DNA from: Octopus bimaculoides
Taxonomy: Eukaryota
DNA: 35,817 nt
Reading direction: 5' to 3'
NCBI RefSeq assembly: GCF_001194135.2
Contig: NC_068985.1
Location: forward strand, 34,552,051 to 34,587,867
In this document: in pieces, positions 3,993 to 35,545 of the stretch
How positions within the stretch are numbered: position 1 is the first letter of the stretch
Layout: the number at the start of each line of letters is the position of its first letter
Position numbers and translations under genes: made by a program
The notes under the pieces: generated by a model
What the model saw: the letters and a program-made list of their open reading frames with translations, nothing else
Database searches by the model: none
Told to the model about the DNA's origin: nothing

Positions 3993-4879
3993 TTTGTTGG
4001 TTTCTTTTCTTCCTTTTCCTACTTATGTACAAGATTTGAACATTATCATTTCATCCATATTCAAGTTTTCCATAGATTTTTAAGAATGCTAATGGAATTA
4101 GAAGAATTAGTTTCATTAAGTTTATTCTATTCTTATCAATGGAATTTATCTTTAAAGAAAAAGAATTTTTCATTCAGTATGTATTTCTGATATTTTTCTC
4201 ACTTTACAATAGATTGAATTACATTTAGATTTTAAGTTATTATTTATTTGCTTAAATTTTTATTAAGTTTTTTACTTGTAATTAATTACTGAAATTCTTA
4301 AACAATCAGTTACTAAACAAGATGACAAAAATGCAAGAACTATATATTTGAGTTGTTTCCTGTCTTTGTTAAACTCTGCCATTTCTTTCTGAGTTTCTGA
4401 ACTAACTTACAAAATGGAAATATTCAACTATGAAGTCTTTCACCACTAATAATTCACATGTGTCTTCAACTTCTACATAAGGCTTGCATGTTCTTCAGAA
4501 ATGGAAACCTGCAAAACATCTTGAAATTAGAGCCAATAACTTAATCTTGTAAAAGGGCACCAAAACACAACACTGCCCATCATAAGAAAACAAGTTATGA
4601 TATTTTTTACTCATAAATATTTAAACTCATTGTAAATTCTAACACTCTTCAAATATGTTTCATTCATTTAAAATACTCCAACTATTCAAACTTCAGTGTC
4701 AAACAAATATGATAATAAACAACATTCATCAAAAAACATTTTCTGTCATCTCCACATCAGGATCACACAGTAATCTCTCCTGACGGTTGCTGCAAAACTA
4801 CCAAGCCAAATCACTTGAGAGAGCTGATAGTTATTGGCACAGAAAGCACATGTTCTACAGGTCAGCACTTGATAAATTA

Positions 4880-11459: not shown

Positions 11460-12400
11460 TTTTAATGGTACTCTCAAGACATAAAAAGTTATTATCATTC
11501 ATCTCAGAAGCATAAGTTTTTAATATTTCTCAAAAGCAAATGTGTCAGAAAATTGATTGTGTTTGGCTAGTTTGTTAAAAACAATCAATGCATCCAGCAT
11601 TGATGCCAAATCATGATCCAAGAGGTAATAATACAACATATATCATTTTCAGACTTAATATCACTTAAATATAACATTTCTGACTCATATTAATCCTGTT
11701 GTAACCAAGAGACTTTGTACCCTCCAGTCCACATCAAATTTTCACAAGTTCCAGAAACGTTTATACCATGATGAAATTCTGCACACAGTGTTATGTATTT
11801 TGCGTTAATAAAGTTTGCATGTCATCTTTTTCAAACATTTTGCTTTGTATGGTGTTGTTCTTCCAGAAATATTCTCATCAGTTAATTCTGAGCAGCCAAT
11901 ATTTTCCAAAACATGTTGGTGCAACATTGAAAAGAGCTCAAATTTTTGTCATATTTTGGTCTTCAGCAAAATGGCAATCAAGAGAAAACTACACCACATA
12001 GGAAGCTCATTTTGTTTTGAAACAACAATAGATAAATTTCAGTCACATATATCAGACAAATTTTCAGACCAGCTGTTTGTGAAACAAAGTCACAAGGAAA
12101 GAAAATTAGTGGGTTTGTTTGATTCAGTAACTTCTCATCACTTGACTATTTCAATTCAGTGCCCTGAAAGTTGGGCTGAAATTTTGAGCCAAGTATTGCA
12201 ATAACACTCACTTTCAGGCAGTATAAAAGCATTTTGTGGCCAGTGCTAGATCTTGAAATCATGTACAATCAATGGAAATTCAAAACTCTCCAGTTTCCAT
12301 GATCTGTTGAACAAAGTTCTGAAGTGCATTGTATTCTCAAACACTCATCGTGAGTATGAATTGCACACAATGGATAGAATTATTTCTCCAAAAAGTTAAC
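11460..12400 (-). mobile_element. Possible L1/Tx1-like ORF2 C-terminal remnant
   Basis: Broken frames give KMTCKLY..WYKRF..FDVDW, LYLSDIKSENDICC..WHQC and LAKH, loosely like the L1/Tx1 C-terminal Cys/His region; weak. Confidence 0.3.
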
Positions 12401-12559
12401 ACACCCATATCAAAAAGTTAACACACCCATAATATTATTTTTTGAATTTAATATTTATTATCCTAAGCGTTTTAGGGCCCCTTACAAACATACACCATTT
12501 TCCCATTCATCTATTTATTTATCTTATCCCTTATAATGGTCACAATAGTTGGTCTTTTG

Positions 12560-12835
12560 TTTTTAAATTTCAACTGACCAATTACATCAAATATTGGACT
12601 TTAGCATATCTCACTTTGGACAACAGGTAGAAGGCTTTAACCACCTACTAGTAAATAAATAAAAAAAAAATTACATTTAACCAATTAACACTTTATTATG
12701 ATTAATACTGTTAATAAAACAGGTTTTACTTGAAGAAAGGCTAAAAATTCCCCCTAAATTTGTTCAGAACTTGTATGAAGCAATTCCTCAGCTTATTAAA
12801 GCTATAACTGATACCAAAGGTGACCAACCCTAGCC
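12560..12835 (+). mobile_element. Tc1-like transposase C-terminal remnant
   Basis: VLLEERLKIPPKFVQNLYEAIPQLIKAITDTKGDQP* resembles the Tc1 end (EEW.KIP...VQNLYESIPRRI.AV..AKGGPT). Confidence 0.7.
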
Positions 12836-12954: not shown

Positions 12955-13050
12955 TAATATATATATATATATATATATATATANNNNNNNNNNTGCTCCA
13001 GCATGGCAACACTCAAATGACTGAAACATGTAAAAGAGTAAAAGAATATA

Positions 13051-13118
<68 letters not shown>

Positions 13119-13145
13119 GAAAGAGAGAGAGAGAGACAGACAGGG
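12955..13145. repeat. Compound (TA)n/(TG)n/(CA)n/(GA)n microsatellites around a SINE-end fragment (12994-13047)
   Basis: Directly visible; tgctccagcatgg...gactgaaacatgtaaaagag is the reverse complement of about 30005-30050. Confidence 0.9.
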
Positions 13146-13495
13146 AGAGAAATAATGCCAATTAGAAACCTGTCACTTGGCTACAAATCTAAGTATTTTC
13201 TTAACTTATATAAAGTAAAAATAATCATTTGTAGTCAATTTTTGTAATGAGTTTTCCTGTTGTTTGATTAACTGAACTACTTACTCATTGAATTATATTG
13301 TATGTGACTGAGTATTCCACAGATATATGTATTCTTAGTATAATCTTCAGTTAGAATCAGTACACTGCAGAGAGTGACAAGGCTGACCTTTTGAATTACT
13401 GACTCAGCTTATTTGATGACCTTTGATGAACTTCATTACTATCTGGCTATACATTCTTCCATACATACAATACAAATGTGTGTATGTGCACTCAT

Positions 13496-13496
<1 letters not shown>

Positions 13497-13537
<41 letters not shown>
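13497..13537. repeat. (CA)n microsatellite
   Basis: Directly visible. Confidence 0.97.
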
Positions 13538-13540
<3 letters not shown>

Positions 13541-14384
13541 TATCCACATTGACTTTATTGTGGTACTATAATTTTCACAATGAAATTTTATAGAAGGTAT
13601 GAATTTCTCATTTTGTGTCATTGCTTCAATCAAATTATCTTGGAAATGTTGTAGCTGATATTTACAAAATAGTTTTTAAAATTCTATTTGCTTCCCCCAT
13701 AACTTTAGCTCTTAGACACATTATCAAAAAAAGAAAAAAACAAAAAAAAAAACAACTTAAATCTATTTTTCCTTTCTGAGATGATTTAGTAACCATAGAA
13801 GATAGATATTTGAGACTGAATTCCAGATATGAGGTACAGGATGTTAGTAAATGGAAATCATTTGAAAGCCCATCCTTTGTTTTTAGTTAGTGTGACAACT
13901 ATTAACAGAATTTAGTTTTCTGAAATGATTAAATAAGCGTAAAGTAATTGAAAATTGGTTGAGGTTATAAGTAGAGTGATGTGGGTTATCAGAATTTCCA
14001 TCAGTGACCTTGACTTATGTAGATCAATTGAAACCATTATAAATTATATAATTATTGATACATGGTTTAACAATTGTCACAACTTCAACGACAATAAATT
14101 TGAACTTATATACGAAAGATAATTTACTAGTTCTTGGAATGATCTCATGTTTCACTACCAAGAATATCCACAATGTCTTAATTCAGACATGCACATGAGC
14201 TGTTTAAGTTATTTATTTACATTCATATATTTTTGGACAAATCAATTTACTTTCACAATTACTAAGCACTCAGTGTTGGAGTGATTGATATGTTTGTTGT
14301 CTTGGTTTGGTAACCTTATTCAACCCTAACCTCTCAGTTTTTATGTCCTTATTATATGCTGTTATTAGTTGAAATATTCTTTTC

Positions 14385-19049: not shown

Positions 19050-21591
19050 AGAGCAATCATTTGCGTTCCTTAGATGATTGTGCAAATCTATCAATAATTG
19101 CTTCTGTATCCATTTCAGCTAACAGTTAATTTCCAATGGATAACAACATGTATGCTTCCAAGTTCTCCTCAAACAGTGAACTTCTTAACTTTGTCTTTAT
19201 GATCTTTAGCTTCACAAACACCCTCTCACATTGGACTTAGGTAACTGATAGTGTGCAGATGACTTTATAAAGTTCATAAGGGTTATCATATGCCTTGTCA
19301 TGAAGTCTGTTGGATGCCAGATGATGAGCAAGTGCTGCAAATTTTACAGTTGTTGCAACTGGAACCTATATTCTCACTGTCATTAATTAATAGCTTTAAT
19401 GCATCAAAGTTTGAAGCAAAAGAAGACAATTCCAATCATATTTGATCTTTGCTGATTTGTGGAAACAATTTAATAATATCTTCCAATGCTTCAACTTCAA
19501 GGCCCTTCTCTAGTTTTAAATTTAGCTGGATAAATCTTTATACAACTGTTTGTGCTGTACAAATTTTGATTCTAGTGACCTAACATTATTAGGTTAATCA
19601 CGTTTACTCAAAAATCAACTGGAGAATCTGAGAAACTCCCTTCATCATTAAAAAGCTCTACTGCCAATTGTTTCTTCCTCTGTCTCTTAGCTGGCAATGC
19701 TGTTTCCAAAGCATCAATTTCCAAAGTTTGATTTTCATCCATATTCATCTGTGAAAACTTGTCATTACATTTGTTTACAAATTCCAAAGCTTTACTGTGA
19801 ATGTTATGAAATGTTCTTGTCTGTTCCTTCAACTTTGTTGTAGCTGAATCTACTAAACCCCATGCAGTAAACATTTCTAATTAAAATTGTCTAATAGATA
19901 ACTTGATAACAGGGCTATAGTTTCAAATATATATACAAGTAAAAAAATGCTGTTAATATGGTTTCAAACATTATAAGACTTTGAAGTAAAACATTTGCTT
20001 CATGTTTTGTTTTGGTATCAAACGTATCTGAATCTTGTATTATTGATAAGCATGTCAATAGATTTACAAAAGTACTGATATTGACATCATGAAAACCTTT
20101 AAATATAGCTGTAGCTGCATTGGATTTTCCTGGCCATCTGGTCGGTTGTACCAATTAGCTTCAATTGTTTCATCTTTTTCTTTGTTCTAGATGTTTTCCA
20201 ACAACTATCCATACAGCCATTCTCTTATAAGATGCTTTCACAAAAGTTGCTAAATTCTGGAGCAAATTGAAAAAGGAAACTGCACATACACAACATCTTG
20301 TAGTTTCAATTATCACCAAATTCAAGATCTGAGCATAGCACCATATATGAACATGTTGATCTGCCACAGCAGCAATTTTACTTTGTAAACCATTATGCTG
20401 CCCGTGGTAACTTGCAGCACCATCTGTGCTGTCAGATAAACATTTTTGGGAGTCAATTCTAAGTTGTAACATTTCAGTTAATAGGTCAAAAAGTTTCTGT
20501 TCTGTACTATCATTACTTGGCACAATGAAAGTAGTTGCTTGCAGATAACACCTTTAAGCACATACTGAATAATAATGCTAAACTAATTGATGGATGAATT
20601 ATCCTGTGTTGAATCAACCTGAATGGAATAATATATTACTTGAGAAACTTCATGACCAGTTCTTTCTTGTATCATATTCTTCATGATTTGGATTAATAGT
20701 TGCTTTACTCAGGTATGTAATAAGTCCACTACGGCCTTTACTTTGAGCCTTTCTTTGTTTTTCTAAGTGATTGAGTTTTGGTCCAGATTGTTTTGCACTG
20801 CAGAAACGTGAGCGGCCATAATGATGTCCTAATTTGCCATCAACTTCAACGTAGCTAAAAAATTGCCATGATTCAGAATCTCATTATCCAAAGTGTGGGC
20901 CAATTTATTTCTGTGACCTCAAAAAAGGAGTGCATGCTTGCTTAACATCTTTATGATGTCTATAATCCTCATGACAATACTTCTCTGCTTCAATATTCTT
21001 CTTTCCTTTTGATTAATGATGCTGCCCCAAAATTTCCCATGGTGTCATCATTAACCACACTGATATATTGCTGAGCATTGCTGACATGTGTTGTTGATTT
21101 GATTTGTGTAAAGCCAAGTTCTGGCTAATATGCCTGTAGCCACTGAAACCACATACAAAGGGTGATAGATTACAAGTGTTGGGAGACTCAAAGACTATGG
21201 AGTATGAACAATATTAGCATCTATTTTCTTTATTATATGTTAGCCATTTTCCTGGGACTGAGTCATTCATAATTTTCCTCTCATATAAAGGAACTTCAAG
21301 TGGCTGAAATGAATGTTCAGCCAAAACCTTTTTCAGATTTGCTTGTAATGGACATTGGGAGATTCCAATAGTTGATCTTCCATATTTTTGTATAGGTTAA
21401 GTTACAGGACATGATTGAGGAACCAAGTCATTTATGCCTGAAATAATATCTGATTCCCTGTCACTAGTTGAAGCTTTGTGCTCAGATGTTGCAACTACAG
21501 GCAGTGCAGATACTGGAACAATGAAGCAAGAAGTAGTACTGGGACTGGGTTGGCTAGTAAAGGATGCACTTGTAATTTTCTCTACATTCAA
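19050..21591 (-). mobile_element. Pseudogenised hAT transposase (ZMYM1-like/DUF4371 type)
   Basis: IQVDSTQD, TDGAASYHGQHNGL, HIWCYAQILNLV, PTRW, and the dimerisation motif ICTLSVT.VQCERVFVKLKIIKTKLRSSLFEENLEAYMLLSI; many stops. TIRs not found. Confidence 0.9.
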
Positions 21592-21604: not shown

Positions 21605-23030
21605 TATTCTTGAAACTCACATGTCACTACATCATCATCATGAGTATTGTTTCTTGCTTCTTGCTTATTTGTTGCAGAACTGGACATTGGTGTGTATAGC
21701 AACATATCCTTGTCTATGTGTGAATATGGGCTTTGTTAAATACAAAGCAAGTTTTTCAAATGTTTGTCTTTGTCATTCATCAATTGTCATTACCATTTCT
21801 AATTTAATAAGAAATTCTTGTTTAATTAATGTAAATGGTAACTCTTCACCTACTGAAGAAAGTATAACTCCTGGTATAAATAGTTTTTCTGTGATGTAGA
21901 CCTTCAGTTATAACTTTTACCTAAATGACTTTATCTTGAATGTCTTGAATAACTAAACATGTACCATTCATTACAAATGCTATGAGCTAGGTCAATTGTA
22001 TGTAAGAGAATAATTACTGCATTAGTCTTTAATTTAAATATGTGTGATGGTAAACCTGAAATATTTAGCTTATTTAAATGCTCTGTAATGAATTCTGAAG
22101 GGTCATCCTGATGCAAACATTGATTATCATTAAAAAGAACCTTTTCATTTTCTGGAAGAAGTTTCAGTATTTCCTTTTATGAGATCAACATCAATATTTT
22201 TGGGTGCTAAAACAGGAATCTTTGAAAATCTTTCTGGATCTGCAATGCATTCCTGTATGACATTTCTATTGAAAACCAAGGGAATGAGGTCATTGAATTC
22301 ATAGACTCACTTACATTCCTTGGGTATAATAATTTCTCCATTTGCTTCTTCTACTACAGAACCATTGTTGAATTGAATTTGGTTGTTTTGATTTTCTGTA
22401 TTCTGTGCATATGATTTTCATTGCATATTTTCTGTCAGTTGAATTGTTTTTACATGTTTTCATAAAGATGAATTATTAAATCTGCTGTCCACTATCGGTG
22501 GTCTGCTTCCATGTTTAATGACAGCTAATATTTGTTGAAAAACTTCAAACAGAAAACATTCAAATCAGGTGTTAACTGTTTTCATAAGTTCTCTTAATGT
22601 TCTACCCAATGCCTTTGGGAGAAAATAGTGAAACATTGGGTAATTCATCCCAAGTTATAACACCAGCCTGAATGATGAAAGCTTCTTTATCACTCTGTAT
22701 GGATATATTACATGTGGTACCATTAACTAGATTGAAAGGAAAGGAGAAAACGGAATGAGGCATTGTATTTCCAGCAAGTAGCAATGCATCTATAACAGAT
22801 GCAGTTGCTATTGCAATTTTTAATTTTTTTTTTTGTTAGACATAGGAGAGAATGACATGATTAGAGAAAAGTTTTATCTGGCCTACCCGGCCCATCAATA
22901 AGCAAAGTTTTAGTTATGAGTATCTTGTGACTGTATCTGCTTTTGAATTGTGAATTGCCTCATTAATGATCTGAAATGTTGCTTGTTGACCACAATTTCA
23001 TTTTTTCACATTTACATCAAAGCATTGAAA
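21605..23030 (-). mobile_element. Degraded Helitron Pif1-family helicase
   Basis: LIDGPGRPDKTFL (Walker A), LLLAGNTMPHSVF, ITWDELP (Walker B), LNISGLPSHIFKLK, LPFTLIKQEFLIKLEMVMTI and KPIFTHRQGYVA, in Helitron order. Confidence 0.88.
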
Positions 23031-23039
23031 GCAGCACAG

Positions 23040-23769
23040 GCCATGTACAGGGGTGCTCCTAGTAAAGTAAGAGTTGGCTCTAGGTACAATGATGAATTTA
23101 GTTTACAGGTAGATGTCCACCAAGGATAGATCCTCAGCTTCCTCCTATTTATCATCAACCTCTAGGCCATAACAGGGAAATTTAAGACTGGAAGCCCTTG
23201 AAAACTCCTATATTCTGATGATCTTGCTCTCATAGCAGAATCTGTAACAGGCTCAGAAAGAAATTCCAAGTTTCAAAACAGAACCTGGAATCAAAGGGTC
23301 TTAAAGCAAACTTAGTTAAGATCAAGGCCCTAGTAGGCAAGAAATTGGATAAGACCCTTCTCCCTTCAGGTAAATGGCCCAGCTCTAATGTAGGAAGGGT
23401 GTAGGCAGAAATTCCATGTGGTGTACTAGTGCCAGCTATGGATACACAAGAGGTGCAGTGGGATAGCAAGGTTTACAGACAAAGTAGTGTTTCTGTGTGG
23501 AAGATATACAAGAGCCACAAAGACTACAGATACATGGGAAACTGATTTCCTTAAATATCCTGGTGGTTCTCTGGAAGTTTTCATTTCATTTTATCATTTT
23601 CATTTTATCTAGTTTCAGCTCATGAGCTGTGGCCATGCTGGAGCACTGCCATGTAGATAATGTTTGCTACTTAGGTGACCTAATTATCAGTGGAGAAGAT
23701 TGTACAGAAAGTTTAATTGCTAGAATAAGAATAAAATGGAAAAAAGTTCAGAGAGCTTTTACCTCTGTC

Positions 23770-23802
<33 letters not shown>

Positions 23803-24510
23803 GAGTGAAAGGAGGATTGTATGATGCATGTGTAGAAACAGTAATGCTGCAAAGTAGTGAGACATGAGCCCTGAATGTAGAGGATATGTGAAGGCTGGAG
23901 AGGAACAAAGCTGGTATTTTCTGCTGGATATACAATGTCAGGGTGCATGTGTAACAAAGCATTGGGGTATTGAGAGAAAGGTTGGGATTTTATGTAGTAT
24001 GCAAGAGAAGAGACTGCACTGCTTTGGTCATCTGAGGTAGCTGGATGATGACAGTTGCATAAAGAACTGTTAATCACTTACAGTAGAGGGAGATCCAAGA
24101 AGACATGGGATGCAGTATTGAAGGCTGATCACAAAACGCTGAACCTGACAAAGATGACAGAATATTGAGATATGTGGTACATTGCTATATTCAAGAAAAC
24201 CCACCCACTAGAACAAAATTATGATCCTAAAATCAAGGTGCCACATAAAAAGCATTGGTGTGGGGGCAGGTACCACAGAAAAAGCACTGATTCTGGTGCC
24301 ACTTAAAAAGCAGTGGTGATAGTATCACATAAAAAGCATCCACTAGACTCTTAGAGTGGTTGACATTGGGAAGGGCATCCAGCCATAGAAACCAAGCCGA
24401 AACAGACTATGGAATTTTATGCAAACCCTGGCCTTGCTAGTTTTTGTCAAGCTGTCCAACCCATATCAACATGGTAACCAGATGATAAATGTTGATGTTG
24501 ATGATAATGA
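23040..24510 (+). mobile_element. Degraded 5'-truncated RTE LINE with 3' UTR and tail
   Basis: Collinear with 32930-34050; gtgccacataaaaagca repeats and ggaagggcatccagc...(gat)n tail; internal SINE fragment (about 23612-23650) and (TC)n. Confidence 0.88.
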
Positions 24511-24741
24511 TTTTTCTGAACTTTATTATTTCTCCTTTATACTGCCCTATCTTATATACTTGCTCTTCATGATCTCACCATGATAGTACTTGTTGTTAAG
24601 TGGGTTCATGTTTTTGTAAAGACAAGTTCCTATGATTAATGTCAAATTATTTTATACATTGTATTATTTTGCATCATGAACTTCATGCTCCTTATTTGTA
24701 AAAATCATTCCTATCAATATTTATCATTTTCTTTGTAGATA

Positions 24742-24796
24742 ATGGAATTCAGTCTGTTACATTTGAGATACGTCTTAATTGTACGATGTTTCTGTG
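24742..24796 (+). CDS. Signal-peptide-like exon of gene B, MEFSLLHLRYVLIVRCFC (exon 24739-24796)
   Basis: Acceptor tttatcattttctttgtAG ends at 24738; ATG at 24742; 18 mostly hydrophobic codons + G; GTAAGT donor at 24797; phase 1 joins exon 34740 in frame (G+TT = Val). Confidence 0.7.
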
Positions 24797-24919
24797 GTAA
24801 GTAACAGTATGTTTGTCAGATAAACATTCTTTTTTTCAGAATTTTTAATTGTTATAAATTTGTATCCACTGATACACTATAGAATTTAATCATTATTGTT
24901 GCTTAATACTAAGGCACCA

Positions 24920-25045
24920 GCTGTAAAAACCCTGTAAAAACAGACAGAGTAGCAAAGGGTAGTTTTCCTATCTAGCCTACACCTATGTGCCATCCTACCC
25001 ATGCATGCATGGAAGATAGATATTAAACAATGATGATGATCATGA
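24920..25045 (+). mobile_element. Degenerate RTE-type 3' tail
   Basis: ccagctgtaaaaac...cccatgcatgcatgga...(gat)n. Confidence 0.55.
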
Positions 25046-25169
25046 TTGTCTGTGTGGGTATTGTATATCATTTACCAGCTTCATTTTCCAAGATGGTGAG
25101 TTGAGATATGAGGGGAATTTGGCTGCTATGTCTAGAAGGTTGATTTAAACCTGACTACTACATCTATTA

Positions 25170-25269
25170 TCATAGCTACTATATGCCAGCACAGACATGG
25201 CCATGTGAGTGGATTGGCACATGAAACTGAAAGAAGCCCATCATACATGTGTGTGTGTGTGTGTGTGTG

Positions 25270-25340
<71 letters not shown>

Positions 25341-25367
25341 GTAAGTGTATTTGTAAGTGTGTACTTA

Positions 25368-25450
<83 letters not shown>

Positions 25451-25477
25451 GTAAGTGTATTTGTAAGTGTGTACTTA

Positions 25478-25519
<42 letters not shown>

Positions 25520-25520
25520 A
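25170..25520 (+). repeat. SINE 3' end (25170-25245) followed by compound (TG)n/(TA)n microsatellite
   Basis: gtgagtggattggcacatgaaactgaaagaagccc, then TG/TA runs with an internal duplication. Confidence 0.85.
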
Positions 25521-25619
25521 GAATTTGTTTTGGGGTTTAAAAATTTACCTGAATCTAAAAGCATGTAGTTGTTTTTAAATAGATTTATTCACATTTCAAA
25601 CTAGTATCGACAATTTTTG

Positions 25620-26674
25620 CTTACTGATGGTACAAATATATAAAAAAAAGGATTTAGGAGACTTTAAAGTTAGAAGATAAAAATTGGACAAGCACGTTCA
25701 AACCAACAAATGTTCAACTGTTCACAGAAACTTTTACATTATTTACATTTGACGGATATATGTCCTCATCTTGTTTGTTGTTAACACGTTTCGGCTGATA
25801 TACCTTCCACCCGAAACGTTGTGTTAACAAGAAACAAGATGAGGACAAATAGCCGTCAAATGTAAATAATGTAAATAATGTACATAATTCCTCATCTCTT
25901 AAATATAGAACTGTGTTCACAGAAATTTCCATGTTTAATAGTTGGAAGAAGGCAGTCTAGGTCAAATGCTTCTTTTGGCTGTTTGCACACGTATACTTGG
26001 CTGGTGGTTGGAAATAAGGTAAAGGATGACTTGTCTGAGAAAATTACATTCTTCCATTGCTCTAGGAACCAATGGAAGAATAGGTTTTTACTCCACTCTA
26101 AATGCTTTGCAATGTTTTTTTTTGAAAGTAGTGGATTGCAGCCCTCCCATGAAATCCAGCTTTGTGCAGCTCCCGGTAAACAGTTTTTGCAGAAACTGGG
26201 TTTTCGAGATGGTCATTAAGCTCTGAAGTAATTTTGGGAGCTGTAATTTTGTGATCCTTTCTAACAATTTGTGTAAAAGTCCAACAGACCCTATCTGAAA
26301 GTTTTGGTTTACTTCTGGAGTTTTGTTTTGATGAGGAGGTTCTTCCCTCTTTCTCAAAGGCTGTCATTACTTTCAAGACAGTACTTCTTGAAGCATCAAA
26401 CATTTTGACTGTTTTCATTACACTAAGGCCTATCATACGATCACCAACAATTTGATGTCTTTGGAAGTCCGATAGATCTGTCATTTTAATGAATTTTAAT
26501 TACCTTTTTCTGATGATATCTGAAAAGAAACAGCAATTTTAGCAAAACATTAAGTAGCACTAATAATAAATTTAAAAAAAACATATAAACAAACAAGCTT
26601 TTGATAGTTTTATAGATATTTCGAAATTATGATAGTATGATGCTAGGTGTTTCCATTATTTTGTCGAACCCCTG
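25620..26674 (-). mobile_element. Tc1-family transposon, 5' TIR plus N-terminal half of the transposase
   Basis: TIR TA|CAGGGGTTCGACAAAATAATGGAAACACC at 26674-26647; MTDLSDFQRHQIVG...GRAAI, then frameshifted WKNVIFSDKSSFTLFPT...TIKHG; interrupted at 25925; left boundary uncertain. Confidence 0.9.
25731..25913. mobile_element. Fold-back Penelope-like insertion with 12-bp TSD, inside the Tc1 copy
   Basis: Arms 25734-25794 and 25811-25874 (3 mismatches + a 3-nt bulge); tgttcacagaaa at 25719-25730 and 25914-25925. Confidence 0.75.
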
Positions 26675-27057
26675 TATGTAAAGAGTGTTAGGTGTGGCGT
26701 ACAGAAATTAAATATTGGGAAAAAAAAGGTTGCCAGAATTTTGGAAAAAAATCTTTGTCAGTTTCTTGAATTCTGTAAATGTACAAACAGAATTCTATGA
26801 ATGTACAAACAGTTTGTTCNNNNNNNNNNNNNNNNNNNNNNNNNNNNNNNNNNNNNNNNNNNNNNNNNNNNNNNNNNNNNNNNNNNNNNNNNNNNNNNNN
26901 NNNNNNNNNNNNNNNNNNNNNNNNNNNNNNNNNNNNNNNNNNNNNNNNNNNNNNNNNNNNNNNNNNNNNNNNNNNNNNNNNNNNNNNATATATATATATA
27001 TATATACATACATGCATACATACATACATATATATATGTGTGTGTGTGTTTGTGTGT

Positions 27058-27104
<47 letters not shown>

Positions 27105-27437
27105 TAATTAAGGCTATCCAAAAGATACCACCATGCTAGAGATAGCACATATTTACTTCGTCATTATATTCACTGTGGTTATATTTTGACCATATAACAT
27201 GTGGAGTTTAGACAGGTAATTAAACTGGTTGTGTGCATACGTACATATATATGTGTGTATACGTGCGTTTATGAATATTTGTATGTGGTTTTAGAGTCAA
27301 GTTTTGACTGCTGTCTCAAGCATGGTGGTATCATTTAGATAGCCTTCATTATAATTTTAATAATAATTATTACCTATAAGAGTTTTATTCCCATGCTGAT
27401 CACTTGATATTATCGGTATTTAAAATAATGATCTTAT

Positions 27438-27496
<59 letters not shown>

Positions 27497-27498
<2 letters not shown>

Positions 27499-28047
27499 AA
27501 TCGAACCAACTTCAACAACTGACACCCATCCCAACCTCTCCTTCATTGGGTTGGGGCAAGTGAAATCGAAATCGTAATTGAGCCATATTCGATGACTGGC
27601 ACCTGTACCAGTGCAGTGGAGCACTAACAGCACTGTCCGAGCATGATCATTGCCAGAGCAGCTGTCTGGCTTCCGTGCTAGTGGCCCATATATAGCACCA
27701 TTTGAACGTCACCTTACTGGCACTTGTGCCAGTGGCACGTTAGAAAATCATTCGAGTGAGGTCGTTGCCAATGCCACTGGACTGGCTCCTGTGCAAGTGG
27801 CACGTAAAAAACACCATTTTGAGCATGGCCGTTGCCAATACCGTGTGACTGGCCCTCGTGCCGGTGGCACATAAAAGCATCTACTACACTCTCGGAGTGG
27901 TTGGCGTTAGGAAGGGCATCCAGCTGTAGAAACTCTGCCAGATCAGATTGGAGCCTGGTGCAGCCATCTGGTTCACCAATCCTCAGTCAAATTGTCCAGC
28001 CCATGCTAGCATGGAAAGCAGACGTTAAACGACGACGATGATGATGA
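27497..28047 (+). mobile_element. RTE 3' UTR/tail-only copy
   Basis: ggcaagtgaaatcgaa...ttcgatgactggc matches 34150-34185 just after the RTE stop; gtggcacgtaaaa repeats; ggaagggcatccagctgtagaaa...(gat)n. Confidence 0.85.
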
Positions 28048-28057
28048 NNNNNNNNNN

Positions 28058-28098
<41 letters not shown>

Positions 28099-28157
28099 GG
28101 TGATATAATATGGTACTTGAGTTTAGGCACCATACAACTCCAAAATAAGGTGATTAA

Positions 28158-28268
28158 AATCAAAATAAGCAACAAAAATATCCAAAGTTAATGCAGTACA
28201 ATCGTTTTATGCGACTCCATTTATTTAAACAATGTGAACATTACATCAAATGTAAAATGCAGAGCAAA
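28158..28268. mobile_element. Degenerate copy of the Penelope-like segment at 640-750
   Basis: aatcaaaataagcaaca...tgcagtacaatcgttttatgcgactcc...cattaca aligns to 639-750; hammerhead core mutated (GAAAC to AAAAC, no CUGANGA). Confidence 0.65.
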
Positions 28269-29150
28269 AGATATAGAAATTTACTGAAATTTCATTTCAA
28301 CAGAAGGACATAATTTTGTAACTGCATTTAAACTCTCCAAGTAGAAAGGAAGCATACAAAAAAACATTTTGACTTAGCCAGACCATACAGGCTAGTAATT
28401 AATTCTAAGCAGATTTTTAACTGCCACTGATTTTTTTTTGTTTTTTTTTTGTTTCATCTTATCAGACCTAGTGATTCAAAGCTTAAGAGGGTACCAGCAT
28501 TTTCTTTATAGGGAAAGGGAAAGGGGTAAACAAAATACATGGATGATATGGTTATAAACAACGATTTCTCTGGTAAAATAAGTTGTTTGACAGATTCTTG
28601 ATGTCATTAGTCTATGAAGGATCATTGCTCTGATTAACTATATCAATAATGACTACTCTTGAAATAACTTTTAAATTCTCAAAACTTCATTTTCTGTTTT
28701 TGTTAATTCAGCAGTTAATATTGTCATAATTATCAATCTTAAAGCTCAATTGTTTTTAAATATATGACATAAAAACTCTTGTTTTAGGAAAAATAAAAAT
28801 GGAGTGATGTAATTATCTCTAGTTTATTTCTGTTGTTAATGTCTGAATTTTAACATGTTTAGTAGCAAATTGAGGATTGAAAATATAATTTTAGAAAGTT
28901 CCAGTTATATCTGCAAATTTTTTGAATGCTTTCTAATATCACTGTCAGTTCTTATTAACAATAAAAAAAAAATGATATACCTTTCAATATTTTAATTGTC
29001 TTTTAGTGGATGAGTGAAAATAAGATGTTACCACTAATTTTTGTGTGAAGACTGCAATAAGGAAATGAGACATTATTTAACATTAACATATTTTTATTGT
29101 TGTGATTGGAAGCAATAATCTGTAGTGTCTCAGTTGAAATATATACAATA

Positions 29151-29316
29151 CTCACATGGAAAGTTTACAGAAATTACTGGATTTAACACAACTTAAGCAA
29201 AACATTTTGTAAATAACGAGTATACTTGCTGTGCTCACATGGAGAGATCATAGAAATTACTGGAGTTAACACAATTTAAGCAAAACATTTTGTAAATAAT
29301 GAGTATACTTTGCTGA
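29151..29316. repeat. About 83-bp tandem duplication (2 units)
   Basis: ctcacatgga...agaaattactgga.ttaacacaa.ttaagcaaaacattttgtaaataa.gagtatact starts at 29151 and 29234. Confidence 0.9.
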
Positions 29317-30000
29317 ACATATGGTCAGAGAAAAATAGCAGTAATCGGAACATTTCAGTGTAGCTCTTGCATGCTGTCCTGATGTAGGCAAACAGAGAGA
29401 CAGAGTGAGAGAGAGAGAGACCCATGTTTCTTGGCATCCAAGTGGCAAGAGAGAGAAAGATTCACAACCACCAAAATATATAGGTTTCAGCTGCGACACT
29501 ACCTGGTGGCGTTTACCAGCAAAGAGACGTAATTCAGCTAACCTTGCTAGTTTATTACAGTCTTCCTCAACACTCAGACCACTTTTAGTATTCATGCTGT
29601 TTTTGTCCATTCAAATATACTAAATAAAATCATTTAATTTTTAAAACTAGGTGTGAAAATTGAACAAAATGGTAGTCAATGTGTTAGTGCATTAACTAAC
29701 TGTACCAAAAGTATTTAGATGAAGTCCAAGAACCAAATTCCTTCTATTATTTGAATGATTTCACATCCTAGAGTAGGTGTGTGCTTCTGATTGAGACATT
29801 GATTTTACAACAGTTATTCCTTCTGATAAGATCTCATTGTAATATTTGAGTTGTTGACAGCAAGCTGATGTCTTAGGCATCATCTATGATATATATTGGT
29901 GTCACTCTTGGTTCTCACATTTTATTCTCTTTGAAATATCCTCTATAAGTCTATTCGCATTTAATTTTAAACTATACATAAAAAATAATTTTTCAAGTAT

Positions 30001-30215
30001 TCTTTTATTCTTTTACTTGTTTCAGTCATTTTGATTGTTCCCATGCTGGAGCACCACCTTTAGTCAAGCAAATCGACCCCAGAAGATATTACTTGTAAGC
30101 CTAGTACTTATTCTATCGGTCTCTTTTGCCGAACCACTAAGAGGACGTAAACACACCAGCATCGGTTGTCAAGCGATGTTGTGGGGGACACGCACAAACA
30201 TATACACACACATAC
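30001..30215. mobile_element. Octopus-type SINE with CA/TA flank
   Basis: cttgtttcagtcatt...catgctggagcacc...atcgacccc...ttgccgaaccactaag...ggttgtcaagcg; same family at 372-600 and 12994-13047. Confidence 0.8.
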
Positions 30216-30222
30216 ACATATA

Positions 30223-30254
<32 letters not shown>

Positions 30255-30263
<9 letters not shown>

Positions 30264-30960
30264 TTGTTTAAAAGAGTTCCAACACTGTCTGTTTTTTATG
30301 TTTTATTTATATTCCTGCAAAACCAATGTGGGATATCGAATATGGAATATACATNNNNNNNNNNNNNNNNNNNNNNNNNNNNNNNNNNNNNNNNNNNNNN
30401 NNNNNNNNNNNNNNNNNNNNNNNNNNNNNNNNNNNNNNNNNNNNNNNNNNNNNNNNNNNNNNNNNNNNNNNNNNNNNNNNNNNNNNNNNNNNNNNNNNNN
30501 NNNNNNNNNNNNNNNNNNNNNNNNNNNNNNNNNNNNNNNNNNNNNNNNNNNNNNNNNNNNNNNNNNNNNNNNNNNNNNNNNNNNNNNNNNNNNNNNNNNN
30601 NNNNNNNNNNNNNNNNNNNNNNNNNNNNNNNNNNNNNNNNNNNNNNNNNNNNNNNNNNNNNNNNNNNNNNNNNNNNNNNNNNNNNNNNNNNNNNNNNNNN
30701 NNNNNNNNNNNNNNNNNNNNNNNNNNNNNNNNNNNNNNNNNNNNNNNNNNNNNNNNNNNNNNNNNNNNNNNNNNNNNNNNNNNNNNNNNNNNNNNNNNNN
30801 NNNNNNNNNNNNNNNNNNNNNNNNNNNNNNNATTATATATTGTATATTATATTATATATTGTATATTCCATATTCTATATCCCACATTGGTTTTGCATCA
30901 ATATAAATAAACCATAAAAAACAGACAGTGTTGGAACTCTTTTAAACAAAATAATATATT
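30255..30960. mobile_element. Element with about 100-bp inverted termini around an N gap (MITE/fold-back-like)
   Basis: 30255-30353 is the near-exact reverse complement of 30860-30960; TA-rich flanks. Confidence 0.75.
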
Positions 30961-31009
30961 CCTCTATACACAATCATACAAAACCCCTTTTTTTGTATTT
31001 ATTTTTACT

Positions 31010-31046
<37 letters not shown>

Positions 31047-31047
<1 letters not shown>

Positions 31048-31210
31048 ACGGGCTTCTTTCAGTTTCCATCTACCAAATCCACTCACAAGGCTTTGGTTGG
31101 CCCAAGGCTATAGTAGAAGACACTTGCCCAAGGTGCCATGCAGTCAGACTGAACCTGGAACCATGTGGTTGTTTAGCAAGCTACCTACCACACAGCCACT
31201 CCTGCGCCTA
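31047..31210 (-). mobile_element. Full-length tRNA-derived SINE
   Basis: Minus strand: aggcgcaggagtggctgtgtggtag...ggttcagtctgactgc...gtgagtggatttggtagatggaaactgaaagaagcccgtc, then a (TA)n tail. Confidence 0.85.
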
Positions 31211-31748
31211 TTCCTCATAGTTCTAATTTATTATTGTTCTTCCATTAGAAAAATTACACCTTTGAATGACAAGGTAGCTGTTAAACAATATGTAGTGAAT
31301 TTCATGCAGGCATAGTGTGGATTCAATCCTTGATCACCAAATTTTACATAACAATTCAACAGCACTTTTCTTACGGTAAAACAATAGTTTTTCTGTGAGT
31401 AACAGCAGTTACATTTACTAGACGCCTTTGCTAAGCCAGAATAATGTCTTCGCCACTTGACCCTTCTAACCTCTTCTAGGCCACCAATAGCTAGAATAGA
31501 GATAACAGATTGTAGTGAAATCTTTTGTTATCAATAATATGTTTATCTTCTAACTAGTTTTAGATAGTTATAAATACTAGAATTTGACAAGGTGAAATTA
31601 GTTAGTGAACGGACAACTAGAGTCATAGTTACAAGCAGGCAGCCACTAATGACAAACGGCCAGAGGGAGACAGAAGGTTATAATCAGCCAACTATGAGAC
31701 ACAACCCTCCTCGACTCTATAACTTTCACTAACTCACTTTCTTTTCTC

Positions 31749-32030
31749 TGTAACATTACCATCTCTCTCTATATATGCTACTATGAGATCGTGTACACAT
31801 CCTGGCTGAAATTAAGTCTTTTTACTTTGCATACTTTTCCATTTACTAATTATACATACCAACCCGTTGTGGTTTTGGATATATGCAAAGTAATGGTAAA
31901 TAAATATTTCTTTACAATCTCAATCACTGTTCTTCTTCCACTTGCATATCTGCAACAATACCTGATACAATCGCTTACTTCCGACTCCACCATATATCAT
32001 AACAACAACAACTGTTACAATTGGTGACCC
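31749..32030 (+). mobile_element. Possible Gypsy-type LTR (31749-32019) with primer-binding site
   Basis: Termini TGTAACA...TGTTACA, internal AATAAA, then AT + TGGTGACCC (PBS-like); no internal ORF seen before the gap. Confidence 0.35.
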
Positions 32031-32608
32031 TCAACTGCAACGAAGAACTAACCATTACAATTGGTGACAACTCCAATGTTCCATTCTATTGTTTATCAGA
32101 TTAATCTTTGCTGTTACAAATATGTGCATNNNNNNNNNNNNNNNNNNNNNNNNNNNNNNNNNNNNNNNNNNNNNNNNNNNNNNNNNNNNNNNNNNNNNNN
32201 NNNNNNNNNNNNNNNNNNNNNNNNNNNNNNNNNNNNNNNNNNNNNNNNNNNNNNNNNNNNNNNNNNNNNNNNNNNNNNNNNNNNNNNNNNNNNNNNNNNN
32301 NNNNNNNNNNNNNNNNNNNNNNNNNNNNNNNNNNNNNNNNNNNNNNNNNNNNNNNNNNNNNNNNNNNNNNNNNNNNNNNNNNNNNNNNNNNNNNNNNNNN
32401 NNNNNNNNNNNNNNNNNNNNNNNNNNNNNNNNNNNNNNNNNNNNNNNNNNNNNNNNNNNNNNNNNNNNNNNNNNNNNNNNNNNNNNNNNNNNNNNNNNNN
32501 NNNNNNNNNNNNNNNNNNNNNNNNNNNNNNNNNNNNNNNNNNNNNNNNNNNNNNNNNNNNNNNNNNNNNNNNNNNNNNNNNNNNNNNNNNNNNNNNNNNN
32601 NNNNNNNN

Positions 32609-34190
32609 GTAGGAGAGAGAATAGTGATGTAGTAGGAGAGAAATGTATTCGCATGGATGATGGTACGCTTGCTCTAAATGAGGCTGCAAAGAAAGAGGTC
32701 TGGAGAAGCCACTACGATAGATTGCTTAATAAAGAGAATGAATGGGAGAAAGAGAGTCTGTCGTATGTCGACCCAACAAAGGGACCAGTTATGCTAATTG
32801 ACACTACATTGGTAGATAAAGCAATCAAGAGTATGAAAACAGGAAAGCCCCAGGCCCATCAGGAATCACTGCAGAGATGCTCAAAATATCNNNNNNNNNN
32901 AGAAGAATGGTTAGTGAGAGCTGTGCGAGCCATGTACAGAGACGCTGTCATTAAGGTGAGGGTTGGTAACAAGTACAGTGAAGAATTTTGGGTAGAGGTA
33001 GGAGTCCACCAAAGTTCAGTCCTCAGCCCCCTCCTATTTATCATAGTCTTCCAGGCAATAACAGAGGAATTCAAGACAGGATGCCCCTGGGAGCTCCTCT
33101 ATGCTGATGACCTTGCACTAATTGCTGAGTCACTATCAGAATTAGAGGAGAAGTTTCAGGTATGGAAGCAAGGACTAGAATCGAAGGGCCTTAGAGTCAA
33201 CCTAGCTAAAACCAAAGTCCTAATAAGTAGGAAGGTAGACAAAACACAAACCCCTTCAGGTAGATGACCCTGCTCGATCTGTAGAAAAGGCGTAGGTAGA
33301 AACTCTATAAGATGTACCCAGTGCAAGCTATGGACACATAAGAGGTGCAGCAATATCGAAGGAAGGTTAACTGGGAAGATAGTTTTTGTATGTGGCAGAT
33401 GTTCAGGAGCAATAAACTGAAAATGTGCAGAAAACAACTTTGGCCACATTCCAGGGAGAAAAACTAGACTTAGTTGATAGCTTCCTCTATCTAGGTGACT
33501 AAGTTATTAGTGGGGGAGTGTGCACTGAAAGTGTAGCTGCTAGAATAAGAATAGCCTGGGCAAAGTTCAGAGAGCTCTTACCTCTGCTGGTGACAAAGGG
33601 TCTCTCACTCAGAGTAAAAGGCAGACTGTATGACGCATATGTACGAACAGCCATGCTACATGGCAGTGAAACATGGGCCGTTACTGCTGAGGACATGCGT
33701 AGGCTCACAAGGAATGAAGCCAGTATGCTCCTATGGATGTGTAATGTCAGTGTGCATACTAGACAGAGTGCAAGTACCTTGAGAGAAAAGTTGAACCTAA
33801 GAAGCATCAGTTGCGGTGTGCAAGAGATACGATTGCACTGGTACTGTCATGTGGTAAGAATGGATGAGGATAGCTGTGTGAAAAAGTGCCACACCCTAGC
33901 AGTTGAGGGAACCTGTTGAAGAGGTAGGCCCAGGAATACCTGGGATGAGGTGGTGAGGCACAACCTTTGAACATTGGGCCTCACTGAGGTAATGACTTCT
34001 GACCGAGACCTTTGGAAATATGCTGTGCGTGAGAAGACCCGGCAAGCCAAGTGAGACCTAAATCCAAGGCCTCTGCCAGGGGTGTAGCCAGCCCACTTAT
34101 GTGTACCTTCCTTCATTGGACACTAAACTCCGCTTGCGAAGACCTGTTGAGGCAAGTGAAATCGAACTAAATTCGACGACTGGTACCCAT
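32609..34190 (+). mobile_element. RTE LINE RT/C-terminal region and start of 3' UTR
   Basis: GVHQSSVLSPLLF, ELLYADDL, PHD-like Cys array 33271-33402, WAKFRELLPLL, MLHGSETW, GRPRNTW; 5' part in a gap; a few stops and frameshifts. Confidence 0.95.
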
Positions 34191-34229
34191 GCACGCATAC
34201 ACACACACACACAAATACACACATATAGT

Positions 34230-34706
34230 TTAGTCCACTGTGAAATTTTAAACCCAAACTAAATGATAACAAAGGAGATCTACTGTGTCAGTGCTAGAAG
34301 AAAAATGACCATCTTTGGTTTCAAGATGAAAGTTGTTCTTCCATCAGGATAATGCTTGGCTGTATACAATGAGCATGATATTCCAAAGGCTGGAACAGTT
34401 TGAATGGGAAACGATGCCCCACCCACCATATTCACAGGACATTGCCCCAGCTGATTGTCTTCAAAATCATTTGGACGGAAAAAATATGAATTCTGTAGAC
34501 GAGGTCAGAACAGTACTGGAGGAGTATTTTTCATCATGGCCAAGTGAATTTTGGACAAGGGGCCTTGCAAGTCTACCAGATAGATGAAAGAGCATTGTAG
34601 AAAATGAAGGAAAGTATATTTTAGATTAAAAAAAAAACTTTGTTTATCTTAATTTTGAAAAATAAAAGAAGTATAAAAACTGCATTATTTATGGGATGAC
34701 CCAATA
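34230..34706 (+). mobile_element. Mariner transposon 3' half with TIR
   Basis: FHQDNA, WETMPHPPYSQDIAP (YSPDLAP motif), FWTRGLASLPDR; TIR aaactgcattatttatgggatgacccaata followed by TA. Confidence 0.9.
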
Positions 34707-34739
34707 TATATATGTGCTTTATATTTTCCTTTCCTTCAG

Positions 34740-35021
34740 TTTCTCTTAAACCAATTGATGGTGGAATAAAATTTGTCAGACAAAATCAACCAGAAACTCT
34801 TGAATGTCCTCTTGCAAAACAAAAAGTTGAAAACTGGCAAATTGGATTGAAAGAAATTAGTAGTCTTCATTGGTTACCTGTTAAAACTAATGAAATTGAA
34901 GCAAATGTGATTCCTGGGAAAGACAACATCTTAAACATCACTCTTCTTTCAAGTAATGATGTAACATTACTTTGTAAGAGCACTGACAAGTGGATAAAAT
35001 TTCAAGCAGTACCAATGTATA
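34740..35021 (+). CDS. Ig-like domain exon of gene B (282 nt, phase 1/1)
   Basis: Acceptor ttttcctttccttcAG and donor GTAAGT at 35022; 94 open codons with TLEC...W (+10)...LNIT...NDVTLLC, two Cys 55 residues apart; N-glycosylation sequon NIT. Confidence 0.8.
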
Positions 35022-35442
35022 GTAAGTACCATATAGTAACCACTTTTTAAATATTTTCATGACCATGAACAAAATATATTTCTCTTAACACAAACTTTGA
35101 GTTTCAGTCAATTCACAAAATCTGTTGTAACAAACAAATACTGCCAATAATATTTTAATGTTTATAAATTCCCTTCTTATGTTATTCTAGTATTATTAAA
35201 ACAGCACTATTATGGCTGAGATTATTTGTTTGATTTGCAGAAGAGAGATTTGGTTGCTAACATGTTATCCATAAATTGTTCTTGGTTTGGTGAAATTAAC
35301 AAAATTATTAATTGTTCTAAGAAGCTGAGAAGTGTTATTGTTATTAAAATGGACATTCTTTTAATGCATTAACCTCATGTTTAGTGTGTATACTGGTTGG
35401 ATTTCTGATTGTCATTAGAAATATTATTCTTGAATATGCGCG

Positions 35443-35545
35443 TGCACACACACACTCACACACACACACACACACACACACCACACACACACTTAAATAC
35501 ACATGCAAACACACACAGAGGCACACACATACACACACAGACACA
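35443..35545. repeat. Imperfect (CA)n microsatellite
   Basis: Directly visible. Confidence 0.95.

Follow-up and report, generated by a model that had tools for sequence, protein, structure and literature searches.

A leader exon and a divergent Ig-like first-domain exon of LOC106874545, a probable member of an Octopus-restricted multi-Ig gene family

In the genome of Octopus bimaculoides, two short open stretches of DNA lie on either side of a gap-ridden interval of nominally 9.9 kb, and the question arises whether they belong to one gene and, if so, what kind of protein this gene encodes. The DNA analysed here, hereafter the window, is a stretch of 35,817 nucleotides (nt) of contig NC_068985.1 (RefSeq assembly GCF_001194135.2, positions 34,552,051 to 34,587,867, forward strand). 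In an initial annotation, made from the letters alone, a hidden gene of the immunoglobulin (Ig) superfamily was proposed, with a signal-peptide exon spliced to an exon for a divergent Ig domain. Overall, the two exons are very probably the leader and the first Ig-domain exon (D1) of LOC106874545 (UniProt A0A0L8GVD7), a member of a family of type I membrane proteins with several Ig domains, which is clustered in tandem and restricted to Octopus.

The two exons and their splice are confirmed by direct reading of the sequence (Table 1). The leader acceptor (ttgtag) lies at 24739/24740, and the ATG at 24742-24744 stands in a good Kozak context, with A at -3 and G at +4. The open frame ends on a lone G at 24796, directly before the donor GTAAGT at 24797. 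Exon 2 starts at 34740 behind the acceptor tatattttcctttccttcag (...tttccttcag, with CAG ending at 34739/34740); here the lone G and TT form a Val codon, which is followed by 93 codons (SLKPIDGG...FQAVPMY) and a lone A at 35021. Counted from the ATG, the leader has 55 nt and D1 has 282 nt, and both the leader/D1 junction and the junction between D1 and the next exon are of phase 1. The canonical sites, the matching phase 1, and the translation that had been quoted for this splice are all present in the letters.

The decisive search was an exhaustive comparison by phmmer of the 93-residue exon with 1.84 billion cluster representatives, which returned eight matches. The best of them, A0A0L8GVD7 (571 residues, E 1.9e-54), is an ‘Ig-like domain-containing protein’ from O. 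bimaculoides; its residues 20-112 are 100% identical to exon 2, and its N-terminus, MEFSLLHLRYVLIVRCFCVSLKPIDGG, is the predicted spliced product, letter for letter. The same 90% cluster includes RefSeq XP_014777803.1, ‘uncharacterized protein LOC106874545’, and both public models use the junction 24796/34740. Since A0A0L8GVD7 matches the spliced product exactly, the gene is real and its junction is the annotated one. Therefore the gene cannot be called hidden, as the gene and its exact splice are already known in UniProt and RefSeq. D1 is labelled as Ig in neither of the two models, and Pfam matches begin at residue 127. A word-indexed protein search with the 94-residue exon gave no candidates, a false negative in view of the 100% identical protein in that collection; negatives of such searches with short queries are untrustworthy.

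The relatives of this gene, about a dozen, are all from Octopus (bimaculoides, sinensis, and vulgaris) and are named ‘uncharacterized’ or ‘Ig-like domain-containing’. Those of O. bimaculoides are LOC128247863, LOC128247864, LOC106874069, LOC106879981, LOC106874055, and A0A0L8HS72, and those of O. sinensis and O. vulgaris are LOC115212116, LOC115212114, LOC118763632, LOC115212249, and LOC118761327. Family members were found by phmmer at E 3.6e-26 to 1.2e-12 with D1 alone and at 5.8e-213 to 7.1e-62 in the full-length search. D1 is 39-58% identical to its relatives, and for the better-covered members the identity over the aligned region is 59-67%. Searches with XP_014777803.1 and with the full-length paralogue P0011 returned 14 and 12 proteins, only from Octopus, and no match at E<=1e-3 in other taxa. 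The view that the gene is lineage-specific and has no conserved orthologue thus agrees with the databases searched, in which no orthologue was found outside Octopus. Two members are located on O. bimaculoides chromosome CM046605.1, at 34.42-34.49 Mb and 34.98-35.03 Mb, and therefore the family appears to form a tandem cluster.

In the family, 6-8 Ig domains are combined with one transmembrane helix (for example LGTIIGCVIGIVLLIILVLLI in full-length members) and with tyrosine-rich, repetitive tails. From D2 on, Pfam recognises Ig_3, I-set, Ig_2, ig, and C2-set_2 domains, and residues 20-112 are left uncovered. In A0A0L8GVD7, the scores are 36.2 bits for Ig_3 (cutoff 30), 28.6 for I-set (23.7), and 25.3 for C2-set_2 (21); higher scores are reached in paralogues (Ig_3 at E 6e-24 in P0005). 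Full-length paralogues have tails of 62-430 residues, in which 4-30 tyrosines occur, and in most of these tails the motifs YxN/YVNV (up to nine), YxxM (up to ten), and YxxL/I/V are repeated. Matches resembling the immunoreceptor tyrosine-based inhibitory motif (ITIM) number 0-3 per tail, and those resembling the corresponding activation motif (ITAM) 0-1.

Two loci, L001 and L002 (LOC128247864), were considered as this very locus in the chromosome-level assembly and were rejected, both being paralogues with 75-92% identity. They serve here for comparison. The paralogue P0002 could be reconstructed exactly from L001, with exons of 55, 282, 291, 258, 255, and 200 nt, every junction in phase 1, and splice-site sequences nearly the same as those in the window. 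The D1 exon is exactly 282 nt in all three loci (13067-13348 in L001 and 20893-21174 in L002). One Ig domain per phase-1 exon behind a phase-1 leader, the layout on which the proposal of this gene was based, is therefore seen in the window and holds in the fully reconstructed paralogue. The distance from D1 to the D2 exon downstream is 21.6 kb in L001. Residues of A0A0L8GVD7 past 113 gave no tblastn match inside the window, and the exons after D1 all lie outside it. Further Ig, transmembrane, and tail exons were to be sought downstream, according to the initial annotation; Ig domains are found in A0A0L8GVD7 and in the paralogues, but none of these exons is in the window, and a transmembrane segment and tail are seen only in the paralogues.

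With the junction Val as residue 1, the core of D1 consists of Cys23, Trp33 ten residues on, and Cys79, 56 residues after Cys23 (Cys22/Trp32/Cys78 in the numbering of the 93-residue exon). This arrangement, Cys-x9-Trp-x45-Cys, is compatible with an I-set-like domain. In an alignment of 13 family D1 sequences (A1), no variation is seen at the Trp or at the second Cys, and the first Cys is conserved to at least 90%; EANV and NILNITLLS are further conserved motifs. The tyrosine corner, D-x-G/A-x-Y-x-C, is typical of Ig domains and not universal among them. It is absent from D1, which reads S-N-D-V-T-L-L-C in this copy, and the position two residues before the second Cys is L, F, I, V, S, or D in the 13 members, never Tyr. 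The alteration of the F-strand motif to NDVTLLC, pointed out in the initial annotation, therefore belongs to a feature common to all 13 members.

The fold of D1 became apparent from the family rather than from the exon alone. Pfam and PDB sequence searches failed with the exon, phmmer against PDB sequences giving chance matches only (E 0.36-0.8), and so did single-sequence AlphaFold, which gave an unreliable all-beta model (pLDDT, the predicted local distance difference test, of 54). For the exon by itself, two of the conditions that the initial annotation had named as refuting its proposal thus applied nominally. The fold matches of that model (best Foldseek E 0.72; FABP, CrdA, and other unrelated folds) were discarded as uninformative. 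With A1 as input, AlphaFold rescued the fold: the model has a pLDDT of 88.0, a predicted TM-score (pTM) of 0.77, and eight strands at residues 8-13, 17-21, 31-34, 37-40, 52-56, 63-68, 74-79, and 84-92. With this model, Foldseek returned 1,651 matches at E<=10 from the PDB. The top 50 are mostly Ig domains of the V-, I-, and C2-sets, including TCR V-alpha, TREM-1, FGFR Ig D1, obscurin Ig58, IgLON5, pIgR, and CD2/CD58, and the Ig matches have query-normalised TM-scores of 0.5-0.6. Since the Cys-Trp-Cys triad is conserved, the family-based model is confident, and the fold matches are mostly Ig, D1 is predicted to be a divergent Ig-like domain without a tyrosine corner. The assignment of exon 2 to such a domain is thus upheld by the fold and by the Cys-Trp-Cys core, and not by a match to an Ig hidden Markov model (HMM).

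D1 is the most variable domain of the family, with a mean pairwise identity of 0.46 versus 0.72-0.77 for D2-D6. Among the window, L001, and L002, its Nei-Gojobori ratio of nonsynonymous to synonymous divergence (dN/dS) is 1.63-2.03, with dN of 0.27-0.35 and dS of 0.14-0.21; the D2 exon has a dN/dS of 0.45 in the L001/L002 pair. No indels are found over the 282 nt of D1 in any pair, and the flanking introns have 26-52 gap positions. In these three sequences, the pattern fits diversifying selection on a structurally constrained domain, though relaxed constraint may also account for it. Because the ratio is also elevated between the annotated genes L001 and L002, it characterises the family and does not indicate decay of this copy.

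The leader peptide of this copy, MEFSLLHLRYVLIVRCFC, is conserved in six family proteins (P0002, P0007, P0008, P0010, P0013, and P0015), and its ATG and donor are intact in L001 (10001-10055) and in L002. In L002, an intact leader exon, MEFNLLYLKYLLIMQCSC, is found at about 4040-4096, approximately 6 kb upstream of the annotated start, and the RefSeq model P0004 has an unrelated N-terminus instead of this conserved leader; LOC128247864 has probably been mis-modelled. The leader had been taken as the first exon of the gene. This is the case in A0A0L8GVD7, which starts there, but not in RefSeq, where a 5' exon ending at 20712 is spliced into 24739/24740, so that the leader exon is internal in models of the RefSeq type. 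XP_014777803.1 has eleven surplus residues at its N-terminus, MIWINSCFTQ followed by Ile; the acceptor lies 2 bases before the ATG, and the junction Ile is the ATA codon 24740-24742. Similar upstream residues (...PQ/IMEF) are present in the paralogue model P0010. The upstream exon may be 5' untranslated region (UTR) rather than coding, and translation probably begins at the conserved MEF.

Immediately upstream of the leader, a non-coding block is nearly invariant among the three loci, its counterparts being at about 9804-10000 in L001 and about 3850-4045 in L002. The block is 93.6% identical to L001, ungapped over 220 nt, compared with 75-79% for the D1 exon and 74-80% for the flanking introns among the three loci, and the similarity ends abruptly upstream of ~24545. 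It contains a TATA-like TTTTATACAT and an upstream open reading frame (ORF) from the ATG at 24686 to the TAG at 24737-24739. The conservation suggests a shared promoter, 5' UTR, or regulatory element, or else a tract of gene conversion.

If the two exons belong to a multi-Ig membrane protein, as we consider very probable, a mechanism can be proposed as follows. The leader would act as a signal peptide and direct secretion, and the protein would be shown on the cell surface as a type I receptor, with the fast-evolving, membrane-distal D1 as its ligand-contact domain. Engagement of a ligand would lead to phosphorylation of tyrosines in the tail repeats and to the docking of SH2 adaptors, Grb2-type at YxN and p85-type at YxxM. 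YVNV is the textbook optimal motif for the Grb2 SH2 domain, and YxxM is the p85 motif. The family would then be a lineage-specific set of recognition or adhesion receptors.

Several observations weigh against this interpretation. As to the domain, neither the exon nor the spliced peptide matches any Pfam family at E<=10, and with the family profile no PDB sequence is matched at E<=10. The hhalign comparison of D1 with an I-set domain of the same family is not significant (E 0.06), though the Cys and Trp columns are in register. No Foldseek E-value is <=0.001, and the top match is a bacterial S-layer Ig-like domain. The nonsynonymous excess in D1 is marginal (one-sided Fisher p 0.06-0.12), and relaxed constraint could also explain it. 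As to this copy, the core of its leader, YVLIV-R-CFCV, is interrupted by Arg15 and a His, and the longest uncharged run is 5 residues; in paralogues with a recognisable leader, Gln stands in place of Arg15, and their core is thus uncharged over about 10 residues. A0A0L8GVD7 ends at residue 571 and contains no transmembrane segment. In XP_014777803.1, a MULE transposase domain (Pfam E 1.4e-10) makes up the C-terminal half, at residues about 506-790 and outside the window. Beyond the gene's own two public models, the search found no protein that is more than 67% identical to it; neither model has a contig on record, and an exact look-up of A0A0L8GVD7 gave no gene in the indexed assemblies. With the transposase in its C-terminal half, XP_014777803.1 is a chimera of gene and transposon, and the models on record for this copy thus have faults: one has the chimeric MULE C-terminus, and the start codon is uncertain. 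Since there is no other match above 67% and neither model is tied to an indexed assembly, the copy may be a pseudogene or may have been dropped from later annotation.

It is therefore possible, though doubtful, that the window contains a decaying or truncated paralogue, a pseudogene or fragment in which the leader and D1 are still open but which no longer gives a working membrane receptor. The Arg in the signal core, unlike every paralogue with a recognisable leader, the end of A0A0L8GVD7 before any transmembrane segment, the run of XP_014777803.1 into a transposase, and the lack of an indexed assembly for either model, with next-best matches at only 67%, would all be in keeping with decay, as would a nonsynonymous divergence in D1 that is at least as high as the intron divergence. 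However, the ATG, reading frame, and consensus splice sites are intact in both exons, and no stop interrupts the 571 residues and at least six Ig exons of A0A0L8GVD7. Moreover, the high dN/dS of D1 is also found between L001 and L002, and the 200-nt element upstream is conserved.

It is improbable that D1 belongs to another class of beta-sandwich, FN3-like or bacterial-type Ig-like, and not to the true Ig superfamily. Such a domain could account for the S-layer protein SbsC at the top of the Foldseek matches, for several VirB9-type domains of type IV secretion systems among them, for the failure of every Ig HMM to match D1, and for the missing tyrosine corner. However, Cys in strand B, Trp in strand C, and Cys in strand F are conserved at the canonical Ig spacing, the top 50 fold matches are mostly V-, I-, or C2-set Ig domains, and the phase 1-1 exon heads a string of Pfam-positive Ig exons.

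Finally, a mere coincidence of an ORF and splice sites in AT-rich, repeat-rich intergenic DNA without a gene, which non-coding stretches of similar length, the ease with which leader-like mini-ORFs arise by chance, and the empty Pfam, PDB, and word-index searches might suggest, is ruled out for all practical purposes by eight homologues at E<=1e-12 (one a 100% match with the identical junction), by paralogous exons of identical length and phase with the exon structure of L001, and by the confident AlphaFold model. At 116 codons (32% GC), the stop-free stretch that contains exon 2 is only the 15th of its kind in the window. However, exon 2 is the sole interval on either strand of the window in which an open frame of at least 200 nt lies between a strong, pyrimidine-rich acceptor and a GT[AG]AGT donor; in four kinds of Markov simulation, 0.15-0.20 such loci are expected per window, and 0.02-0.06 if a length of at least 280 nt is required. 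The leader alone is within chance, there being five non-microsatellite mini-ORFs from an ATG to a donor on the plus strand. On these statistics, the leader exon could have been an arbitrary pairing, a reading overturned by its conservation in paralogues; it is this conservation, and not its own statistics, that validates the leader.

The intron between the two exons is interrupted by five assembly gaps, at 26820-26987, 28048-28057, 30355-30831, 32130-32608, and 32891-32900. As all of them are intronic and keep a distance of at least 1.8 kb from both exons, the frame and splice sites do not depend on them. The leader abuts D1 directly in A0A0L8GVD7 and in the six family proteins with a conserved leader, and therefore no exon is hidden in the gaps. 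The corresponding intron is 3.0 kb in L001, where it holds an 83-N gap of its own, and about 17 kb in L002. The window is colinear with L001: segments 24522-24845, 28572-29003, 29814-29996, and 34718-35454 correspond to 9781-10102, 12030-12436, 12628-12815, and 13045-13781. Unique segments from three of the six inter-gap pieces thus occur in the same order and orientation as in the L001 intron, a colinearity that supports the arrangement of those pieces as assembled; the pieces 26988-28047, 30832-32129, and 32609-32890 contain only repeats, and their placement is without independent support.

Part of the intron is made of transposable elements (Table 1). The Tc1/Tc3-type remnant has an 84% identical copy at 53344-54081 of L001. 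The 10-N gap at 32891-32900 falls inside a long interspersed nuclear element (LINE) whose copy in L002 (87-89% identical) has about 400 nt at this point; the length of the gap is therefore probably understated, and that of the intron is nominal. The 477-N gap 30355-30831 is flanked by an inverted repeat of 109 nt (30245-30353 and 30860-30968, 93% complementary), a possible foldback element or artefact of the assembly at this gap.

Table 1. Positions in the window of the exons of the LOC106874545 copy and of associated features.
Feature	Position	Strand	Remarks
3' end of upstream 5' exon	20683..20712	+	ATG 20683, MIWINSCFTQ; donor cag/gtatgt at 20712/20713; XP_014777803.1 peptide maps here
Near-invariant non-coding block, ~200 nt	24545..24741	+	Three-way paralogue alignment (window, L001, L002)
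Leader exon	24740..24796	+	ATG 24742, 18 codons MEFSLLHLRYVLIVRCFC + 1 nt; read directly; equals N-terminus of A0A0L8GVD7
Leader-to-D1 intron	24797..34739	+	Nominal 9,943 nt; five gaps; swollen by transposable elements and microsatellites
Tc1/Tc3-type transposase remnant	25930-26680 (Pfam part 26101-26499)	-	HTH_Tnp_Tc3_2, E 5.9e-9
LINE reverse-transcriptase copy	32613-34192	+	RVT_1, E 7.9e-13
D1 exon (exon 2)	34740..35021	+	282 nt, phase 1 at both ends; predicted divergent Ig-like domain; read directly
D1 exon donor GTAAGT	35022..35027	+	Read directly; D2 exon beyond the window end

The rest of the window is AT-rich (about 25-46% GC per kb), with many TA/CA microsatellites, transposon remnants, and nine N-gaps in all. 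The LINE copy of the intron is one of three copies or remnants of a single family with RVT_1, the others being at 8708-10661 (minus strand) and 23026-24090 (plus strand), and this LINE family recurs many times in L001 and L002. At 9395-9871, a PHD/C1-like zinc finger follows the reverse transcriptase. Within the minus-strand copy, the flanks of a 10-N gap at 10030-10039 are duplicated, with WEKESLPNVDPTEGPA translated on both sides, and the gap looks like an unmerged contig overlap and not like missing sequence. A tandem array at 8406-8666 on the plus strand, has a 42-nt period and comprises a 103-nt unit in four copies, 60-83% identical, with ...PLCLHEAQCSK... recurring in the translation. 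It is located in a block of higher GC content (44-46%) at 8-11 kb of the window; the array probably belongs to a repeat element beside the LINE. A direct duplication of about 340 nt (44-379 and 1764-2101, 83-90% identical, 1.72 kb apart) contains the 124-aa ORF at 181-555, for which Pfam gave no match. The minus-strand ORF 20173-20553 was considered as a hAT-type transposase remnant and rejected for want of Pfam support. Rfam and tRNA scans of the window found nothing.

Several known systems resemble this family in part. When a full-length paralogue is compared with solved structures, its best sequence matches are Robo2, ICAM-1, Dscam, and CD22/Siglec-2 (E 2e-6 to 1e-3). Like these, the octopus proteins are type I membrane proteins with I-set or C2-set Ig domains in a row; however, the similarity of the Ig domains is generic, without orthology, and FN3 domains are absent from the octopus family. 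The tails differ as well, as those of the octopus paralogues have few ITIM, almost no ITAM, and many YxN and YxxM motifs. Judged from the paralogue tails, the family would seem unlike the classical KIR, LILR, and Siglec-type receptors with ITIM or ITAM. The Octopus paralogues and orthologues share with the gene in the window the leader, D1, and the string of Ig exons, whereas the transmembrane segment and the tails with tyrosine motifs are seen only in the full-length members.

A conceptual likeness is found in cnidarians. The Alr family of Hydractinia (bioRxiv 10.1101/2022.03.04.482883 / PMC9546547) is a clade-restricted, tandemly clustered family of Ig superfamily membrane proteins. The octopus family is alike in being clade-restricted and clustered; there is no sequence relationship, and the analogy is functional only. 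Reportedly, the N-terminal domains of Alr proteins also escape detection by HMMs, and their tails are said to carry tyrosine motifs.

One tentative extension, which goes well beyond the identity of the two exons and is less likely to be right, is that the family consists of diversifying recognition receptors, in which D1 would be positively selected, the tails would signal via Grb2-type (YxN, YVNV) and PI3K-type (YxxM) docking, and the 200-nt element would co-regulate the paralogues. If so, the family would be a convergent cephalopod counterpart of the variable Ig superfamily clusters of vertebrates and cnidarians, with roles in immunity, self/non-self discrimination, or neuronal or sucker recognition.

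For the window itself the finding changes little, and nothing about it is surprising in kind. What has been added to a gene already on record is that its unlabelled first domain is predicted to be a divergent Ig-like domain and is by far the most variable part of a clustered, Octopus-restricted family. This family appears to be unstudied: no mention of six of its locus, UniProt, and RefSeq identifiers was found in the literature searched, and topic searches gave no description. Since the immune and cell-recognition receptors of cephalopods are poorly known, it would be reasonable to study the expression of this family and its variation in populations.

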